Shown here: positions 1-62,809 of the stretch, one piece after another
Layout: the number at the start of each line of letters is the position of its first letter
Numbering within the stretch: position 1 is the stretch's first letter
Source of the DNA: Podarcis erhardii
Lineage: Eukaryota
DNA length: 64,000 nucleotides
Reading direction: 5' to 3' (one strand)
NCBI GenBank assembly: GCA_964252035.1
Contig: OZ176205.1
Position numbers and translations under genes: made by a program
The notes under the pieces: generated by a model
What the model was told of the DNA's origin: nothing
What the model saw: only the letters and a program-made list of their open reading frames with translations
Databases searched by the model: none

Positions 1-336
1 TTATTGCCTGCTTCCAAGGGCTAAAGTCAAGAAAGAAAATGTTTCTATTATCCTGGAGAAGTCTTGAGTGGCATTAAAAATCTGGTTTCTGTCAGTGATG
101 TGAAGCAGCTCCCTTGAAGCACACTCTCCCTGGTCCAAGGGACAAGATATATAGTCCTCACCCCACCCACCACTTCTCGACTGCCTCTGAGCAGGTGAAA
201 GGAGAAATGTTGATAGCCTAAGAGTAATCCTGTTACACTGAAAGATGCTCCTGAACTGCAAAATCAGACAATGTGATCAATGACATGTGCAGATCATGCA
301 AGATCAAGTCTGACCAAGAGAGCACCAAGTTCAGTA

Positions 337-695
337 CAGTGGAACCTTGGTTGTCGAACGTAATCCGTTCTGGAAGATCGTTCAACTTCCAAAATGTTCG
401 ACAACCGAGGATCAAAGGGCTGTCAGTAAATCTCTCTCTCTTTTTTTTGAAAATCTTTATTAAACAAACTTTTAAAAAAACATACATCCCAAAAAATAAG
501 GGTACAGATACAATTACATTTACAGAAACAAAGACTGTCAGTAAATCTCATTGGGGGGGAAAATGAGAAATATGCATCAGAAGCCATTAGACTTCTGAGG
601 TGCGTTTGAAAACTAAAGCAGTTACTTCCGGGGCGTTGGCGTTTCGTTTCCGAAACATAAAGCAGCTAAGATGTTTGACAACCAAGGTTTGACTG
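337..695. mobile_element. Tc1/mariner-type MITE, interrupted by a short L1-type insertion
   Basis: TA flanks at 335-336 and 696-697; 23-bp terminal inverted repeats CAGTGGAACCTTGGTTGTCGAAC / rc CAGTCAAACCTTGGTTGTCAAAC (3 mismatches). Confidence 0.85.
435..534 (-). mobile_element. 100-bp 3' terminal fragment of an L1-type retroposon
   Basis: 15-bp direct repeat CTGTCAGTAAATCTC at 420-434 and 535-549; poly-T tract and TTTATT (reverse polyA signal) at the left end. Confidence 0.75.
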
Positions 696-1507
696 TACAA
701 GCAATTCTGAATGAGATCAGCTATTGGGGTTCTCAGGAATGACAAACTTTCTGGCTACTTAAAATCCCAAAATATGCCACTAAACCCTCATGCGTGAGAA
801 GCATACAATCCACCTCTGAAGTCCTTCTGCAATCTAATAACATTTGAACACCCCTCTCTCTATATTTTTGGTAGATGAAACATTCCTTAAGTAGCAAAAA
901 CAAATGTGGATTGAGGAACTGAAAAAAAAATTATCTCCCATTTTGTCTAATGCAGAGATGGGAAACTTCAGCCTGTTGGGCAGATGCAGTCATTCAGCCC
1001 TCTCCACCTGGCCACTGGGATGTTCTCTAGGCCAACTTCCCCTACCCAGCTACACCCAGCAACAGACCTACTTTGTACCATCACTGAGTATTTTTGCCTG
1101 GCTGGAAACATCCTTGAACTCTGATGATTATTTTTCCTTGCTTAGATAAAGGTTGCTGCTACTGCTGCTGCTGCTGCCGCCACCACCAGTTTAAACGTGT
1201 TAGTCACTTGTCACCTAAGAGGTCTTCAAGTGACTTACACATACCCTCTAATATACCTCAGATGAAAATCTGGAAACACGTCTTTTTGGTGCCACGCTCT
1301 CACGGGAGCCAGCTGATTCGTGTGAAAGCACCGCACTGCTACAAGCGCCAGCTGCAAGCACTGGCTCCTCCTCCCCAAGCTCAGTGGTGCTGGTGCTGGA
1401 GGGGGAAAACAGGGCATTCCAGGATCAAATCAGAAGCTAGGATGGCTACTATCATTCTTGGATGTCCTGGGACACTTAAAAGGTATGCTCACATTGCAGA
1501 ACATATA

Positions 1508-1749
1508 CAGTGGTACCTTGGGTTAAGAACTTAATTCGTTTTGGAGGTCTGTTCTTAACCTGAAACTGTTCTTAACCTGAAGCACCACTTTAGCTAATGG
1601 GGCCTCTTGCTGCCGCCGTGCTGCTGCCGCACGATTTCTGTTCTCATCCTGAAGCAAAGTTCTTAACCCGAGGTACTATTTCTGGGTTAGCAGAGTCTGT
1701 AACCTGAGGCGTCTATAACCTGAAGCGTATGTAACCTGAGGTACCAATG
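1508..1749. mobile_element. Tc1/mariner-type MITE (family also at 19328 and 53832)
   Basis: TA flanks; ends CAGTGGTACCTTGGGTTA ... TAACCTGAGGTACCAATG; internal sequence matches the two other copies in reverse orientation. Confidence 0.9.
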
Positions 1750-3449
1750 TACACAAGTACATTATAAAACTAGGGGGCAGAGCTGAACTTAAAGGCTGCA
1801 CAGCTTCAGTGGCCAGTGCCTCTCCCTCTTCCTGCCGCCGCCAGAGGCTGCTTCCCTGCACTTTCCCCTTTGCCCAGCTCTGCACTTGGCCTCCTCTGCC
1901 TACTTTGAATGTTGCAGGGGCCTGACCTCTCCCAAAAATATTGGGGGTGTGGGCCAAAAGAGCTCAGCCCCTAGGAGTTGTCGCCCCATTGCAGAAAGTG
2001 AAGTGGGGTATTAATGTGGATACGCCTCCAAACTAGGATTGGAAATAGGGGACAATAGAGTCTGATCACAGGTAATTGGTGATATCTCCACACTCTGAAA
2101 AAAAAAAAGACTCAATGTTTGGAACTTTCAGAGCATACACCACTCTGAGATCGCCTTGCTGTAACCTTCCCTGAATCTGATTTACCTGTTGGACTGTAGT
2201 GCTTCACTTGTTCTGGCGAGTCACCTGGGGAAAGCATCCTGTGCAGTCACTTTCTTCGTGTGATAAGGACCTACCAATATGGTAGTCCTGGGTGGCTAGG
2301 GATCTGTAAATTACACTAAGATTGTGGCAATGTCTTCCCGGAGACATCCTTATCTGCAGGCCTTGCTAGACAGTCTTAAATTGGCAATATTGTACCCTAG
2401 GAAGCATCCAAATTAGAACATAACTACTTAGCATGCCTAATTTACCACTTCATTAGAGCTGTTGATAATTTATAATAAAGGATTATTATCGTTGTGGGCT
2501 TGTCTCAAAAAAAAAAAAAAAAAAAAAAAAAATCAGATACAAAAGACGGGGCAGGGATGGGAGTCAGGAATGTTAACTAAATTATATGCCAAGAATGTAA
2601 AGGGACATTATTGTATCTGTGAGAAATCCATCATAGGTGCTCTTTAAAAGGTTGTTTGTATGTAACTGGGTACTTTTACAGGCCCCCTTTTAAAGGGGTT
2701 CCCAGTTAAATGCAGAGATATAAATCAACACAAGCGGAGGGGAAACATTCCGACGCCTTGACTGTATGAGCCAATTACCTGCTGATTCCACAAATTTCAT
2801 GAATTATTAAAGAAAATCAAAGATTGATGGGATCGACTTTCGCCCTTCAGAACTTGCAATAAAAAAACTATACAGTTTCCCTTTTCAGGGAAATTTGAGA
2901 GCAGGTGGCCCCCCCTCCTGAAGATGGCTTTTTCATTGTGGCCATATGCTTTGAACATAGGCAGCCTTTATCTTAATATCTTTCTTACTAATAATAAATA
3001 GCAATCTTATGTTATGTTGAGAGATCTTAAAGAGCAATTTACCACAGTCAATGGTGTGTCTGATGCAAAGCAGGGCAGATGGTTAATAGAATTTTATTAA
3101 TGCACTTAAAAAGTGTGGGATTCATTCCAGTCAATTCTTCTGGTCCTCTAGTGTATCCTTTGTTGACCCTGGGTCCTCAGATGTTGTGGGACTACAACTC
3201 CCATCATCCTTGACCACTGGTCCTGCTGGCTAGTTGTAGCCCAGCAGGGACCCAAGGCTGAGAAATTCCACTCTAATACCTTGCCTCTTCCTTTTCCTTC
3301 TCACTGTTCTTTAGGCTGCAACAGTAGGTGACAGGGCAGACAGGACAACATTGCATGCCCAGCTTCCTGATTCCAAGTTTCACTGCTGCTTACCATAAAG
3401 AAGAAGGGTGGTCAGAAATGGAGCACCTACTTCCAGAAGAGTTCTTTCA

Positions 3450-14837: not shown

Positions 14838-15142
14838 AAGACAAAAAAATCCGTAAGAGAATAGAAAATTGCAGTTTTGGAAACAATTTTGTACTTTACT
14901 TGGCTGAGCTTGAGAATTCCCCACCCCCAACTTACAACCACCAGGAACGATGCCTCGATGCCTGCATCAGGAAAATTTTGGGCAACACATGGCAGGGCAG
15001 AGTCAAACAAAGATGTGGTGTCCCAAGCCCACATTCTCAGCATGTTCACACTCCTGCCTCAGTGACATCTGCTCTAGCTTAGTTTATGTCAACAGAATGG
15101 AAGGTGACAGGATCCACAAGGACATGCTCTACGGAGAGCTGG

Positions 15143-15753
15143 TGTGATGGCCTGGGATTCAGACTTGGAGGCTGAGCCTGAGGAATCTCAGCCTACACAG
15201 GAGTCCCCGCCTCCAGAACCAGCTGAGCCGGGGCTGGGGCTTGAACTTGAAGGGTCCTCACCTGTGCTGGATCCTCAGGTGCAGGCACCAGCTGAGTCTG
15301 CTCTGGCTCCTGAGGTGATGGAGGACCCATTGCCTGCAGGTACTCCACTCTCAGCCCCATCAGGGGAAGCTGAGGTTGCCTCTGGGTCTGGTAACCCTCC
15401 AGCCTCTCCTGAGCTACAGAGGCTCAGGGCAGAGAGGCAGAGGGAACTAAGTTCCCGCAAGAGGAGTGCTCGCCTCCAGGCCAGGAGAGGCGAGTCACCT
15501 GTGGACCAGGGCTGCCCTATGCCTCGGGGCAGATAAAAGCCAGCCAGCCCCAGTCCCAGGTTGTGGAAGCAACATTGTTGGCAGCCTGTTCCTGCCTGCA
15601 CCCTCCTGTCCTGCTCTCCTGCCAGAGTCCTGACCTCACCCGACTCCCTGCCTTGGACCCTGCTTCAGCTTTGACGGACAGCCTCCATACAGCACCCTCG
15701 ACCTCGGACTGGACTCGGACCTCGCTGCACAGTTAACCCTCGGGACCAGCACA
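15143..15753 (+). mobile_element. Solo LTR, family A (611 bp; probably Gypsy-type, clade not proven)
   Basis: TG...CA termini; perfect 5-bp TSD GCTGG (15138-15142, 15754-15758); TATA-like GATAAAA at 15532; homologous to 48870-49480. Confidence 0.9.
15144..15536 (+). CDS. LTR(U3)-encoded 130-codon acidic Pro/Glu/Ser-rich frame with a basic C-terminal motif (retroelement-derived, not a host gene)
   Basis: Open from LTR base 2 to TAA; SPELQRLR..RSARL..GESP.DQ shared with 48871-49296 through synonymous codon changes. Confidence 0.6.
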   Translation: MMAWDSDLEAEPEESQPTQESPPPEPAEPGLGLELEGSSPVLDPQVQAPAESALAPEVMEDPLPAGTPLSAPSGEAEVASGSGNPPASPELQRLRAERQRELSSRKRSARLQARRGESPVDQGCPMPRGR

Positions 15754-16142
15754 GCTGGCTTCAGGAATCAGATCCACCAGGTGACCAACTTTGTGTTACA
15801 ATGATGCAAACATAACATGAAGGCTGGCAACCCCAACTCTATTGTGTGGGAATCCCTTGCAGACAACCACAATGCCTGGAGATAGGGATCCATAACAGTG
15901 CCCAGAGGAGGAATGACTACTAGGTGGGGTGCGGAAAGAAGAAATGTCATGGTGCACCTGAAGCAGCACAACCAGATGCCTTCATCTGCCCCAGCTGCAA
16001 CAAAACATGTCTCTCTTATATCAGTCTCTACAGTTACAGCAGGCACGGCAAACTTCCATCAGTTTGACTTTAATCCCAAAAGCACACTCTTCCATTGTCT
16101 CCTGAGACATATGGATGCTAACAACAGTTAATATGTTGTTTT

Positions 16143-18032: not shown

Positions 18033-18398
18033 TGTTGTTGTTGTTTAGTCATTTAGTCATGTCCAACTCTTCGTGACCCCATGGACCAGAGCACACCAGG
18101 CACTCCTGTCTTCCACTGCCTCCCGCAGTTTGGTCAAACTCATGCTGGTAGCTTCGAGAACACTATCCAACCATCTCGTCCTCCATCGTCCCCTTCTCCT
18201 TGTGCCCTCAGTCTTTCCCAACAACAGGGTCTTTTCCAGGGAGTCTTCTCTTCTCATGAGGTGGCCAAAGTATTGGAGCCTCAGCTCTGTCCTTCCAGTG
18301 AGCACTCAGGGCTGATTTCCTTCAGAATGGATAGGTTTGATCTTCTTGCAGTCCATGGGACTCTCAAGAGTCTCCTCCAGCACCATAATTCAAAAGCA
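18033..18398 (-). mobile_element. Bov-B (RTE) LINE 3' fragment
   Basis: Translation LQYFGHLMRREDSLEKTLLLGKTEGTRRRGR.RTRWLD...AWCALVHGVTKS is the Bov-B ORF C-terminus; (CAA)n tail. Confidence 0.92.
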
Positions 18399-46803: not shown

Positions 46804-47683
46804 TTGTTGTTGTTTAGTTGTTTAGTCATGTCCGACTCTTCATGACCCCATGGACCAGAGCATGCCAGGCACTCGTGTCTTCCACTGTCTCCCGCAGTTT
46901 GGTCAGACTCATGCTGGTAGCTTCGAGAACACTGTCCAACCATCTCTGTTTGACAACCACCAGATGTCAAAGAGAACAACAGCTACCAGACTTTTAGAAG
47001 ACATCTGAAGGCAGCCCTTTTTAGGGAAGCTTTTAATGTTTGATGTATCACAGTATTTTAATATTCTTTTGGAAGCCGCCCAGAGTGGCTGGGGAAACCC
47101 AGCCAGATGGGCGGGGTATAAATAATAAATTATTATTATTATTATTATCTCGTCTTCTGTCGTCCCCTTCTCCTTGTGCCCTCAATCTTTCCCAGAATCA
47201 GGGTCTTTTCCAGGGAGTCTTCTCTTCTCATGAGGTGGCCAAAGTAATGGAGCCTCAGCTTCACAATCTGTCCTTCCAGTGAGCACTCAGGGCTGATTTT
47301 TCTTTACAGCATTGGACTTTCCTTTCACTTCCAGGCAAATCCACAACTGAGCGACCTTTTGGCTTTGGCCCAGCCACTTCATCAGCTCAGAATCTACTTG
47401 CACTTGTCTTCCACTCTTCCTTAGTAGCATGTTGGATGCCTTCCGACCTGAGGGGCTCATCTTCCAGCGTCATAACTTTTATATGCCTTTTGTCTTTGTC
47501 CATGGAGTTTTCTTGGCAGGGATACTGGAGTGGCTTGCCGGTTCCTGCTCCAGGTGGATCACGTTTGGTCAAAACTCTCCACTATGACCTGTCCATCTTG
47601 GGTGGCCCTGCACAGCATAGTTCATAGTTTCTCTGAATTATTCAAGCCCCTTCACCATGGCAAGGTAGGGATCCATGAAGGGA
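46804..47683 (-). mobile_element. Internally deleted Bov-B derivative, interrupted by an L2 tail
   Basis: 46804-47295 matches 18033-18398; 47300-47683 is Bov-B-like 5' sequence (GCAAGCCACTCCAGTATCC.TGCCAAGAAAACTCCATGGAC). Confidence 0.8.
46947..47146 (+). mobile_element. L2 3' tail inserted in Bov-B
   Basis: Matches the 3' end of 28759-29158; (TAT)n tail; ATCTC duplicated at 46942-46946 and 47147-47151. Confidence 0.85.
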
Positions 47684-47894: not shown

Positions 47895-48377
47895 TGTCAG
47901 ACGGCTGCAAGCAACTCCCACAGCCGGTTGCCAGGAACGTACAAAGACAAGGAAAAGTTTCTTACTGTCCGCTTTTTATTCAATATTTGGAACACAGTCT
48001 CATGGATAATGGCGTTGTCCCAAGTGAATCTGCATCCCCCTTCTCTCCAACTTCCTCATTTGTCCTCATCACCTCCTGTACGGCTGCTGCTTAGTGCTTT
48101 CTGTCTTTGAGCTTTTTGTTCTCCTGCTTTTAAGGCTTGCCAGGGTCTGGGAGATGGCGGGTCTGGATTGCTTTCTAGTGACAATGTGTCAGCCAGCTGC
48201 TGTTCTGGCTCTGCCTACTCCTTCTCTCCCATTATTTCCCAACTTTTCCCCTCATCTGCCTCTGAGCTGTGACTTCCTTCAACCCCCTGTTGTAATTCTG
48301 AACTGTCTTCCTCTTCTCTTGAAGGGTCAGGCTGGGGAGGTGGTCTCCACCATTCCTCCTCTGCCCAGTCCCTGACA
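47895..48377 (-). mobile_element. Solo LTR, family B (483 bp)
   Basis: TGTCAG...CTGACA termini; 5-bp TSD CCCTC/CCCAC restores the CR1 sequence; AATAAA on the minus strand near 47975; homologous to 62507-63765. Confidence 0.9.
48056..48376 (-). pseudogene. LTR(U3)-encoded 106-codon acidic frame of family B, one internal TAG
   Basis: VRDWAEEEWWRPPPQPDPSREEEDSS...HSSEA...SWEIMGEKE*AEPEQQLADTLSLESNPDPPSPRPWQALK...; aligns with the frame in the 62507 LTR. Confidence 0.6.
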
Positions 48378-48869
48378 CCCACCTCTACAGACGTTCCAGC
48401 TTGTCAATATCCTTCTTAAATAGTGGCACCCAGAACTGTATTCCGGGTGGGGCCTTGACCTTGGTCTGTACATTATACTTCTCTTGATGCAGCCTAGAAT
48501 AGCATTAGCCTTTTTTTGTTGCTGCATCACACTGTTGACTCATGTTAAGCCTGTGGTGTACTAAAACTCCTAGGTCCTTTCCACATGTACTGCTGGCAAG
48601 CCAGATGTCCCCCATCTTATATCTGTGCAGCTGGTTCTTCCTGCTTAAGTGCAGAACCTTACATTTGTCCCTGTTGAAATTCATGTTGTTAGTTTGCTCC
48701 AAGTCAGTAGTGCCACTGCTGCTTATGAGGAAGTACAGCAGGAGGGGCAAGGTTGCAGGAAGATTGGTGCAATGGGAGCACACCTGCAGGAGCATTAGAT
48801 TGGTTCCACCCAGTGACAAAGCTGCATGCTCCAGCACCGGGGGGTGGGGTGGGGTGGAGAGCAGGCGGG

Positions 48870-49480
48870 GGTGATAGCCTGGGACTCGGGCTCAGACTCG
48901 GAACCAGAGGAGACTCAGTCTGTACCGAATCCTTTGCCTTCATCTGAACCAAGTCTGGGGCCTGATCCTGAAGAGTCCCAGTCTGCACAGGTTCCCGTGC
49001 AACAAACACCAGCTGGGCCGAGTCAGGGGCCTGAGCCTGCCCTGGCTCCAGATGCGGGGATGACCTTGTTTCCTTCAGCTGGGCAATCACTTACAGCTGC
49101 TCCACTACCAGTTGGGTCAAGAGAGGTTGAGGCGGCCCCTGGGTCTAGTAACTCACCGACATCTCCCGAGCTGCAAAGACTAAGGTCTGAGAAAAGGAGA
49201 GACCTGAATACTCGCAGGAGGAGTGCTCGCCTTTGGACGAAACAGGGTGGTGAGTCGCCAGGGGATCAGGACCGGCTGCTATCCCGACAAAGATAAAAGG
49301 CTGTCGGACCCCGCCCCAGGTTGCGGGAGCAACATTGCTGTATGCTAGATCCTGCTTGAGATCCTGTACCTGTCCTTGCCTTGTTTCCTGCCTCGTGGCC
49401 CTGCCTTGGCCCTGTCAGACTGACTCCCAGTGGAAGCTTTGGATTCTGGACCGGTCCTGGACTGTGGTTCACGGGTTACC
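48870..49480 (+). mobile_element. LTR, family A, second diverged copy; 3' end lost or interrupted
   Basis: Colinear with 15143-15753, including GATAAAA and CCCAGGTTG.GG.AGCAACATTG; no terminal CA or TSD found. Confidence 0.8.
48871..49296 (+). CDS. LTR(U3)-encoded 141-codon acidic frame ending RRRSARL...R-stop (retroelement-derived)
   Basis: Open frame VIAWDSGSDSEPEE...SPELQRLRSEKRRDLNTRRRSARL...GESPGDQ; paralog of 15144-15536. Confidence 0.6.
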   Translation: MIAWDSGSDSEPEETQSVPNPLPSSEPSLGPDPEESQSAQVPVQQTPAGPSQGPEPALAPDAGMTLFPSAGQSLTAAPLPVGSREVEAAPGSSNSPTSPELQRLRSEKRRDLNTRRRSARLWTKQGGESPGDQDRLLSRQR

Positions 49481-49728
49481 CAGTGGGGACGTGGCTGGCA
49501 CGCATCCTGGGGGCGTGGCGCGTGTCCCGGGGCCATGGTGTCCCACCCCACAGTGGTGTGGCATGTGTCCTGGGAGCGTGGCACGCTGCCTGCGGGGGCG
49601 TGGTACCTGGTGCAGTGGGGGGATGCGGTGGGGAGTGCTCAGCACATGTTGGGAAGGCGTTCACGATGGTACCCCCCTCCCTGATGGTGCTGGGGGCAGT
49701 ACGCTCCCCCCCGTTTCTCCACCAGTGG
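49481..49728. mobile_element. GC-rich hAT-like MITE abutting the LTR
   Basis: CAGTGG start; repeated GGG.GCGTGG motifs; imperfect right end; TSD unclear. Confidence 0.4.
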
Positions 49729-50752
49729 TTCCACCAGTGTGTTTGCACCATGCTGACCTCAGCACCTCCTCACCCCTTTGCCTTACCTCCCAGTAAGCAT
49801 TGCAACCAGCTGGAGGTCATATTGTCCTCTACTGGTTGGCCTGCTGGAGTTATGTTGCCACTTAACACACTTGAATGAAGCTTGATTGGAAACAGTTGCA
49901 TTTCCATTTGCAAATAAGTGTGTGCATGTGCAAAATGCTACCTACCCATTTACATGCCCATACATCTTCAAAGCTATTGATTCTCAGTCAACATCTACCT
50001 TAGCTTCTCTATCCCAGCTCCTATCCTTCTGTTGCAACTTGGAGCCTGGAGCTCATTTTCTTTGTGCAGCCTTTTCTGTTAAAGGTCTAACTAAATCAGG
50101 AATGTTTGATGAGACAAAAGGAATCTGCCACTGCGGCTGCTTAAATTATACAGTACTCAAAGCATATCTGAAGACCCGGCTCCAGGCAAACAAATAACGG
50201 TGTGATGTGGAAGCTTCAAGATAACAATCAGAGTAATAGCTTTTGATTCGAACTTGCTTTAGTTGCTTTTAGAACAGCAAGTAAAACCGGAGAAATGTGC
50301 TCCTATCAGATGACTGTCCTTTGAGGGTTTGTAAGTGATACAAAAAGGATTTGTGTAATTTCCAAGAGTGTTTGGAGGGTGGTGGCGGAAATCAGTAGGT
50401 TCTATCAAGTCTGTACTATTTGACCCTTTGCTTTCCTTCTGACATTAGATAGATATCTAATGTACTTTTAATCTGCACATCAGAGAAACTTTGGAGTGCA
50501 TTTTAATGCAATCCACTCAATGAGATGCTCGGTTTCTGATGCACATTAGGGTTGTGGAGTTTGGGCAGGCAGGCATGAATTCAGCGACATACGCTCCCAT
50601 GCTTCCTTATTCTACCAAAGAGTGTCTCAGTAGACCCACACTGACTTGAGGAATCCTGCAAAGTGTAGCAATGAACATTAGCCCAATCTATGCTATTTTG
50701 TGATCTGTTTGAGACAGGTTTACTTGTTTTTATAATTGTAGCTGTTGTATTT

Positions 50753-50875: not shown

Positions 50876-51115
50876 ATCACTCTACTGACTGAGTGATCCT
50901 CTGTTTGTTTTATAATGGTATGCTAGAGTGTTGTAATCCATTCTAGGACCTTATGGGAAAGGCTGGGTAAGATATACAGTACTGTATATAAATAAATGGC
51001 TTTTAAAAGGATTAGGCAGATACATGGAAGATTTAGTGGTACAGTTTGATTCAGGACTTAATGGTCTCTCCCTCTTCACTGGGTTGTGCATTTTACTTCA
51101 CAATGTTGTAGGCCA

Positions 51116-51784
51116 TTTTTATACATCTTTCCTAATTTTGCCGGAGATGTATAAAAATGCCGATAATAGCTGTTGGAGATGTAAAGGCAAGATTGGGACC
51201 TTTTTTCATATCTGGTGGACCTGTGATGTAGTGAAGGAATTCTGGGGAAAGGTGTATGACGAATTGAAAAAAATTCTGAAGTACAGCTTCCCGAGAATAC
51301 CTGAGTTGTTCCTCTTGGGCATGACTGGTGAGGAAATAAAAAAACCGGATCAAACTTTCTTTCAATATGCCATAGCCGCTGCGAGGATCTTGATTGCGCA
51401 AAAATGGAAATCCCCTGACATGCCCACGATTGGAGAGTGGCAAGTGAAGCTATATCAATATATGGAATTGGCGAGATTAACTCAGAAAATTAGGCAAAAT
51501 AATACAACGAAACTTAAAGATGAATGGAAGAATTTTTTAATTTATATTGAGAATAATATGGGAATTAGCAATATAACAGCAGACGATAATTGATACCTTC
51601 GATGTACTATGCTATTGTAAGTTCTACTGCGGAGATTGTATCATGGTTATGGTTATGTAATCCTAAACCAAGCTGGATGGAAGTTGGTTTTATCGTTTTT
51701 TTTCTATTTTCTTTTCTGTTTTGGTGAATTTTGTTCTCTGCTATCTTTTCCTTTTTCTTTTTTGTAACTACTTTTTCTAAATAA

Positions 51785-61445: not shown

Positions 61446-62809
61446 ATGGATGTGATTTTGTTGTTGGGTGCAGATAGATGATAAATAGATGATATTCTGT
61501 ATCTATATTTTCTTTTTCTTTTTTTGTATCTTAAAACCACTTAAACTACTATGTTAATGTCTTTCAAGTTCAAGAAAAGACTGCTGAATCTCATTAAAAT
61601 GAAGTTAAGCATCTTTGTTTGTTTTTTTTAAAAAAGAGGTGAACTACACTCTATTTTTCAAAAGTAAATTATTAGGACATAAAATGTGTCATGTTCTTTC
61701 CTCTGAACTTTAGATATTCGTTTATTTGCAAGGGATAGGGGAATTCAGGGTCACAAAGCTGCAAAAAATCAACATCATTAAGCTCTATACTTTATTTATA
61801 TTGGTGGATTAATATAATATATTTTTAGTTGGGATTTAAAGTCATAGTTTGGAATTAAGAATTACTCTCTTTCCTGGTCCATGACATACATAAAAAACAA
61901 AGGAACCAATATTGATCAGTACAGATTGATCCCAACAGCCTAACCTACCTCACAGGGTTGTTGTGAGGGTGAAGTGAAGGTCAGGAGAAGAACCGTGTGC
62001 TCCAACTAATCAATCAATAAACACACACACACACACACACACCAACATGAGGCTACAATGGGAAATGCCGCACCAGGAACTGGAATTTGCAGATGCCTCT
62101 GACTGTCAGCAAGTCATCCAATAAAAATCAAATTGAGAAGCACACTTTTTAAAGATGTAAGCTGATTTACTTCTTAGATATTTGGTGAAGAGAGCGCCAT
62201 GTGCTGTTTCATTCAAACTCTATCACATTTCAGCTCTTTCTTATATGACATAGCCTTTTGGTAATACAGGGTGATTTTATGGGTATTTCATTTTCATTGA
62301 TTTAAGTTAAATAAAATGATGGGGTGATTTCTTTTTTCTTTTTCTTTTTAGCTGAACTGCAATAAATATTGAGAGACACTTTTTGTAAGGAATTTGAGCT
62401 CCTCATGTTAACACCCAGCACTGGATCTATCCCAGCACACTGGTTCTCTATGGTTGTGATCCTATACACATTAAACTGAGGCAAATTCCATTTAATTCAG
62501 CTGTGCTGTCAGGGGCTGGACTGAGGGGGGGGGCAGCACCCCCCTTCGACTGAACCTTCCCGAGAACAGGAAGACAGTATAGATTTAGAACAGTGGTTTG
62601 CAGAAGGGCATAGTTCAGAGGCTGCAGAGAGGAGAAGCTGGGAAATATTGGGAGAGGAGCGGGAGGAAGAGGAAGCACCAGGGGAGAGTCAGCTGACAGA
62701 CTCAGTGTCTTTGGAAAGCATTCCTGACCCCCGCCCTCCCAGGACCAGACGAGCATTGAGGGTAGCAGAAAGCTCAAAGGCAGAAAGCTCAGATTAGCTG
62801 TCTCAGGGG

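Follow-up and report, generated by a model that had tools for sequence, protein, structure and literature searches.

The integrase of a Ty3/gypsy chromovirus in the lizard Podarcis erhardii almost certainly carries a C-terminal tail that is encoded by the element's 3' long terminal repeat (LTR), and this tail ends in a basic segment containing RRSARL, a near-exact likeness of the core of the HMGN nucleosome-binding domain. The element is represented by two solo LTRs, referred to here as copies A and B, in the window, i.e. the whole stretch of 64,000 nucleotides (nt) of contig OZ176205.1 (assembly GCA_964252035.1) that was analyzed. A first-pass annotation had described the product as an 'LTR peptide'; it is indeed encoded within the LTR, but in the protein models of P. 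muralis it is the end of Pol, i.e. of integrase within Gag-Pol, rather than a separate protein. On sequence grounds, the motif may give this vertebrate integrase, in the U3 region of its own LTR, a two-point tether that helps or directs integration and that has been scattered in the form of nucleosome-binding exons. This reading is put forward tentatively, as a possibility of some weight.

Integrase tail encoded in the 3' LTR

Seven P. muralis models (P0003, P0009, P0014, P0021, P0026, P0027 and P0028) run from a chromodomain straight into the sequence GVMAW[DE]SDSE, and the junction ..RGDGVMAW.. (GV[MI]AW) in all seven aligns with the start of the LTR at 15143 in copy A and 48870 in copy B, so that a continuous frame leads from integrase over the 5' terminus of the LTR. 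In P0003 and P0009 the chromodomain is recognized by Pfam (Chromo, 5e-15), and a path without a stop, ..KPGPDPRLRGGPGRGDGVMAW[DE]SDSE.., leads from it into the tail. The Pfam domains RVP_2, RVT_1, RT_RNaseH, rve, SH3_Tf2-1 and Chromo are found in P0014 and Retrotrans_gag, RVP_2 and RVT_1 in P0004, while P0026 (1559 amino acids; aa) and P0028 (1551 aa) have gag at the start and the tail at the end. The P. muralis models thus contain the full set of chromovirus features, namely gag, protease, reverse transcriptase (RT), RNase H, integrase and a C-terminal chromodomain. The Gag-Pol and Pol models with the motif at their end measure 1240-1559 aa, and the five long models (P0014, P0021, P0026, P0027 and P0028) share a common end point 16 residues past RRSARL, with tails of 110-116 aa; in the window copies the stop lies 20-21 residues past the motif.

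There is very little doubt that in full-length elements the single Gag-Pol frame continues into the 3' LTR, covers approximately its first 390-420 nt and ends at a TAA stop inside a TATA-like box, and, judging from its G/R-rich residues, it appears to pass the polypurine-tract region before the LTR edge. Since this frame runs into the 3' LTR, every LTR codes for an integrase tail of 110-140 aa. The element is therefore a chromovirus within the smaller set whose pol frame enters the LTR. A free-standing 'LTR protein' starting from the ATG was considered and rejected, the ATG being part of the conserved LTR terminus TG(TG)ATG. Four models that start with MAWDSD and are spliced to gag (P0002, P0004, P0008 and P0013) are probably artificial joins of the 5' LTR to gag.

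The tail frame occupies 15147-15536 in copy A (+ strand; 129 codons plus stop), where it is in frame from the first LTR bases, and 48874-49296 in copy B (+ strand; 140 codons plus stop), where ATA (Ile) stands in place of the ATG of its relatives. Each frame opens with [MI]AWDS, which is followed by an acidic stretch rich in Pro and then by SPELQRLR, and closes with a TAA stop (15534-15536 and 49294-49296) inside the TATA-like box AGATAAAAG (15531-15539 and 49291-49299, + strand), which is a 9-nt exact match between the two copies. This box is presumably the TATA box that marks the U3/R border, and the tail-coding stretch is called U3 here because it lies upstream of the sole TATA-like box. 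RNA reads from two runs, at approximately 10-20x and from many copies, showed no start or end peaks. The tail of copy A is 62-65% identical to the tail part of the P. muralis models and that of copy B is 78% identical to P0001, an isoform of P. muralis LOC114604991. Protein searches found relatives in Podarcis only; an exhaustive profile search for relatives of the tail outside Podarcis found none, its seven matches consisting of five with the tail, all from Podarcis, and two that were unrelated and weak.

The tail is divided into three regions. It opens with a conserved acidic segment, AWDSDSE.EPEE, and continues with a linker of approximately 70-95 aa that is variable, disordered, acidic and rich in Pro (net charge -12 to -18, approximately 19% Pro). 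The last region is a conserved basic end, SP[ED]LQRLR.E..R.L...RRSARL[KQ]A[KR], with a net charge of +7 to +10 over approximately 40 residues at the C-terminus. A single-sequence AlphaFold2 (AF2) model of the chromodomain with the tail was poor (mean predicted local distance difference test score, pLDDT, of 55) and consisted of coil except for a low-confidence helix over DLQRLRAERRRELV, in the SPELQRLR region just before the motif. By inspection, the chromodomain, EYEVE..LIDWKGYG, retains residues Y, W and Y, which we take to be the positions of the HP1 aromatic cage, as would be expected of an H3K9me reader.

Conservation of the motif and selection

Translation of the + strand yields RRRSARL at 49213-49233 in copy B (codons CGC AGG AGG AGT GCT CGC CTT) and RKRSARL at 15456-15476 in copy A (codons CGC AAG AGG AGT GCT CGC CTC), as the first-pass annotation had reported. 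Its description of the surroundings is equally borne out in both copies, with a long acidic, Pro-rich stretch and SPELQRLR (49162-49185 in copy B and 15405-15428 in copy A, + strand), the start of the conserved basic segment, preceding the motif. In a six-frame translation of the 64-kb window, [RK]RSARL occurs twice against an expectation of 0.014, at the homologous places of the two LTRs only. The claim that this is the most conserved segment also holds: GAGGAGTGCTCGCCT (49218-49232), at 15 nt, is the longest exact DNA match between the LTRs of copies A and B, and in a comparison of nine related sequences no invariant stretches of amino acids are longer than RSARL and LQRLR. The form of the motif needs amendment. 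Although R[KR]RSARL is present as described, the family form is RRSARL[KQ]A[KR]; from the comparison, the K of copy A and the W and T that follow the motif in copy B are apparently changes private to these decayed copies.

The nine sequences that reach the motif, seven of them distinct there, represent two subfamilies with 44-50% identity in the tail: an A-type (copy A, P0002, P0014, P0021, P0026, P0027 and P0028) and a B-type (copy B and P0001). All 9/9 contain RSARL unchanged and 8/9 contain RRSARL, whereas the sequence varies both just ahead of the motif (SSR, NTR, STC, VSP, VAP) and just behind it (QARR, WTKQ, QAKQ, KARR, KARG, KAKR). The motif is thus kept in both LTR subfamilies and in every relative that reaches it, which is the conservation on which the first-pass annotation had made its reading depend. 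In addition, at 49208 and 49237 the majority letters of family contigs depart from copy B (N to S and T to A, respectively), and among the best 40 of 249 contig differences no majority difference lies inside 49213-49233.

Within the frame, every insertion or deletion that separates the two copies has a length divisible by three. The ratio of nonsynonymous to synonymous substitution (dN/dS; Nei-Gojobori method, copy A versus copy B) is 0.33 for the whole tail frame, approximately 1.0 for the linker and 0.10 for the last 49 codons, where the proportions of synonymous (pS) and nonsynonymous (pN) differences are 0.73 and 0.24; the first 30 codons give a pS of 0.80 and a pN of 0.24. The SPELQRLR codons differ between the copies by five synonymous and zero nonsynonymous changes. 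By these measures, the codons around the motif are under purifying selection, and the real constraint is stronger than that measured because both copies are decaying solo LTRs, in which the ratio is pushed towards 1.

Likeness to HMGN

The published nucleosome-binding core of HMGN is RRSARLSA (PMC13347269, PMC12480509). RRSARL is identical in the lizard tail, and RRSARLKA or RRSARLQA, matching 7/8 residues of the core including arginines R1, R2 and R5, is found in P0001, P0002, P0014, P0021, P0026, P0027 and P0028; the corresponding residues are KRSARLQA in copy A and RRSARLWT in copy B. If HMGN1/2 continue as RRSARLSAKP, as we assume, the family form would match 8/9 residues. The likeness does not extend beyond the core. 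The Pfam family HMG14_17 gave no match at E<=10 with either whole tails or the C-terminal 41-56 aa, the Lys/Pro-rich, DNA-contacting half of the HMGN nucleosome-binding domain is absent from the tail, and the motif ends a polyprotein of 1240-1559 aa, whereas HMGN proteins are small stand-alone nuclear proteins. For these reasons, the lizard tail is, from its sequence, not a member of the HMGN family. A sequence search of the PDB with the tail found no match.

Proposed function and alternative explanations

In the mechanism proposed here, RRSARL would act like the HMGN core, its arginines docking on the acidic patch of H2A-H2B. Judged by sequence and by analogy with known anchors, such docking is quite plausible, if not quite probable. 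The tail motif may provide a second hold on chromatin in addition to that of the chromodomain: the integrase would hold the nucleosome at two points, with the chromodomain on the methylated H3 tail, the arginine anchor on the acidic patch and a flexible acidic spacer joining the two. Such a two-point hold would help the intasome to stay on chromatin and/or to choose its target, and the same basic cluster may serve nuclear import too. The tail follows the chromodomain of integrase and is thus in the right place for an integration tether. The nucleosome tether or nuclear localization signal (NLS) that the first-pass annotation had suggested is supported in part, by the conservation of the motif, the purifying selection, the fusion to integrase and the acidic-patch binding of the HMGN-like motifs of Dsup and Dot5; however, the conservation may not be purely at the protein level, as the RSAR codons are identical in the DNA of both copies.

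Several observations weigh against nucleosome docking by the tail. The net charge of the tail, -17, could mask the motif or lead to repulsion from the acidic patch. In addition, RR.S coincides with a site for basophilic kinases, and the cluster resembles an NLS. The lack of an HMG14_17 match and of the Lys/Pro-rich half counts here as well. Furthermore, the relatives are all from Podarcis and 7/9 of the sequences compared are closely related A-type copies, so that the independent lineages are few, effectively two subfamilies. Finally, given the identical RSAR codons, part of the conservation may reflect a cis-element 60-80 base pairs (bp) upstream of the TATA-like box.

The alternative that fares best is that the basic cluster RLR.E.RR.L...RRSARL.A[KR][RG] is only an NLS of the integrase or pre-integration complex, its likeness to HMGN being coincidental. 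A segment with a charge of +7 to +10 over approximately 40 residues at the very C-terminus suits such a role, the NLS of Ty1 integrase occupies the same position (PMC7459421) and the measured selection would be explained equally well. However, an NLS tolerates K/R swaps and shuffling, whereas S, A and L are invariant here and the order is fixed in both subfamilies; by inspection, the cluster is almost purely Arg, fits the classical K-K/R-x-K/R pattern of importin-alpha signals poorly and shows no clean likeness to the bipartite form, KR-x10-12-basic, either. We consider an NLS alone unlikely, and the two functions are in any case compatible, the Ty1 NLS doubling as a targeting domain.

A selected short linear motif with another partner is somewhat less likely again. 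It could be a phospho-switch for a basophilic kinase (RRxS), a 14-3-3 site, a nucleic-acid-binding element or a segment that pairs with the acidic part of the tail. RR.S fits the consensus sites of protein kinase A-type kinases, the -17 acidic and +8 basic parts lie within one tail, and the charged helix of the low-confidence AF2 model directly precedes the motif. None of these roles, however, requires an invariant A-R-L after the serine. The same serine in HMGN is a regulatory phosphorylation site within the nucleosome-binding core, and a phospho-switch would accordingly be compatible with docking on the nucleosome rather than opposed to it.

It is improbable that the block owes its conservation mainly to a role in cis, as a DNA or RNA element of the LTR (a factor site close to the promoter, for instance), with the amino acids as a by-product. 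This explanation would account for the length of GAGGAGTGCTCGCCT, which as the longest exact match of the LTRs exceeds the 9 nt of the TATA-like box and the two blocks that follow (9 and 10 nt), and for its location 60-80 bp upstream of that box. It would also account for the absence of change at the synonymous sites of RSAR, of which 0 of approximately 3-4 have changed despite a pS of 0.73 around them (p~0.01, a rough estimate before multiple windows are considered, and weak evidence, since synonymous variation in the motif was judged from the two window copies only). On the other hand, the adjacent SPELQRLR is under clean protein-level selection, just two DNA copies are compared, and 7/8 residues of the HMGN core would arise in the pol frame by chance with a frequency of only approximately 1e-7 per position (0.007-0.014 per window). 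A chance resemblance in a functionless read-through tail is very improbable: the motif is short and its likeness was noticed after the fact by a reader with many motifs in mind, but the dN/dS of 0.10 in the C-terminal part, the exclusively in-frame indels, the stop position common to five long Pol models and the invariance of RSARL over subfamilies that are 44-50% identical all argue against it.

The two solo LTRs and their surroundings

Copies A and B belong to one repeat of approximately 610-625 bp, are approximately 70% identical in DNA and are the sole copies of the family in the window. No gag, RT or chromodomain sequence is found anywhere in the window, and both copies are therefore regarded as solo LTRs. 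Copy A (15143-15753, + strand, 611 bp, A-type) begins with TGTGATGG and ends with CCAGCACA; these TG..CA termini are inverted repeats of each other at 7/8 positions. GCTGG stands on either side of copy A (15138-15142 and 15754-15758) as a 5-bp direct repeat without mismatch; the copy thus shows the TG..CA ends, short inverted repeat and 4-6 bp target duplication of an LTR. Copy B (48870-49493, + strand, B-type) was delimited using nhmmer and by alignment to copy A; its 3' end is degraded and its boundary there is uncertain (49484-49493), and the flanking pentamers GCGGG (48865-48869) and GCTGG (49494-49498) are 4/5 identical. The near-identity of the pentamers that flank both copies may be coincidental, or may stem from an integrase that prefers certain target sites or from a wrongly placed boundary.

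Copy number was assessed from contigs of public sequencing runs that were aligned on copy B and whose depths were summed. The summed depth is 1e4-1e5 inside the LTR versus 12-27 in the unique flanks, and 66 contigs part from copy B exactly at 48871/48872. In one of the runs the unique flanks are matched throughout, and this run probably comes from the source species. The LTR family is very high-copy in at least two related organisms, and the element is a Ty3/gypsy chromovirus with thousands of copies in this lacertid lizard genome.

Copy B lies within another G-rich repeat, as indicated by contig joints (48843>49485 and others). A G/C-rich repeat with CGTGGC-type periodicity is found on both sides (48808-48869 and 49494-49776; summed depth approximately 300-3000), and the LTR is considered to have been inserted into it because contigs join both sides without the LTR. 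The G-rich stretch before copy B was also considered as a leftover polypurine tract; this was rejected, as the contig joints place it in the other repeat. Directly upstream of copy B, a CR1-like long interspersed nuclear element (LINE) fragment (..FNRDKCKVLHLSRKNQLHRYKMG..) lies on the - strand at 48400-48705 and 48505-48837; it is also very high copy, with a summed depth of up to 1.5e5 and RNA reads from both strands. A 189-aa open frame at 51024-51593 (+ strand) contains a C..C..H..C zinc knuckle with a weak match to Pfam zf-RVT (E 0.015) and probably represents the C-terminus of a LINE ORF2. Other interspersed repeat pairs in the window include 48096-48377 with 62507-62788 (-) and 47147-47299 with 18173-18318, among others.

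Pieces of the LTR also appear in gene models. A consensus 5' splice donor, GTGAGT, is present at 49250-49255, shortly after the motif in copy B, and P0001 (isoform X2 of P. muralis LOC114604991) starts at the LTR MAWD, keeps CRRSARLQAKQGG and then splices to unrelated sequence. Solo LTRs of the family are thus annotated as first exons with an HMGN-like motif, and are perhaps used as such. A piece of the tail frame (MAWDSDSEDETEES..) forms the N-terminus of P0005, a P. lilfordi family-3 G-protein-coupled receptor model, and an internal segment of it (EEPGLGLEPEGPSPVPDPQEQ..) is found in P0007, a P. muralis CEP63/Deup1-like model; these are either exonizations or annotation artefacts.

Significance and comparison with known systems

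Chromoviruses provide the standard example of chromatin readers carried on an integrase. A full-text literature search, in which subscription journals were thinly covered, found no paper in which an integrase or LTR retrotransposon is connected with an HMGN-like motif or with an anchor on the acidic patch and no description of lizard chromoviruses with such a tail. If the motif does bind the acidic patch, the tail would represent a naturally occurring case of an integrase that mimics a chromatin protein of its host and a natural counterpart of the engineered fusions in which HMGN1 is added to retroelement proteins (PMC13708176). It would also offer a peptide-sized, testable model of two-point nucleosome capture, and thousands of ready-made nucleosome-binding exons would have been spread as solo LTRs, some of them already in host gene models. 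Apart from this function, the element is an animal element whose presumed U3 is promoter and coding sequence at once, and the tail explains why many solo LTRs in this genome have long open frames that are predicted as exons.

Among acidic-patch binders, the tardigrade protein Dsup (RRSSRLTS; PMC12480509) and the yeast protein Dot5 (RRSARIAT; PMC13347269) bind through R1, R2 and R5, and their motifs are less like the HMGN core than the lizard motif is. HMGN, Dsup, Dot5 and the lizard tail have in common that their motif is part of a disordered stretch in a protein directed to chromatin; the lizard motif, a putative acidic-patch binder, differs in being located at the end of a retroelement polyprotein of approximately 1550 aa. 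The integrase tails of Ty1, Ty5 and murine leukemia virus (MLV) share with it a linear motif in a long disordered C-terminal module that tethers, or in the lizard would tether, the integrase to a host factor (PMC7459421, PMC10050235, PMC4027182), and in Ty1 integrase a short C-terminal segment targets integration and is also an NLS (PMC7459421). However, the partners of these tails are Pol III (AC40), Sir4 or BET proteins and not the nucleosome surface.

Docking on that surface is known from other invading elements. The chromatin-binding sequence of Gag of prototype foamy virus (PFV), the N-terminus of LANA of KSHV, the herpesvirus associated with Kaposi's sarcoma, and the C-terminus of IE1 of human cytomegalovirus (hCMV) are arginine anchors on the acidic patch, and the loss of chromatin binding by PFV Gag redistributes integration sites (PMC9040877). 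These peptides and the lizard motif are all short basic peptides of an invading element for which acidic-patch docking has been shown or is proposed. The former have other sequences and none is located in an integrase, whereas the lizard motif is a copy of the host HMGN core that is fused to integrase next to a chromodomain.

In gene organization, the counterpart of the lizard element is group A of the plant CRM chromoviruses, in which an integrase targeting motif (the CR motif) is encoded in the 3' LTR (PMC3059260). Both are Ty3/gypsy chromoviruses with a polyprotein frame that enters the 3' LTR and a putative targeting motif encoded there, and the start of the lizard LTR, TG(TG)ATG, resembles the TGATG of CRM (PMC3059260). 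The lizard element differs in its animal host and in having no sequence similarity to the CR motif. Furthermore, the CR motif replaces the chromodomain in CRM, whereas the lizard element keeps an intact type-I-like chromodomain (type I as defined in PMC3059260), to which the LTR adds the tail.
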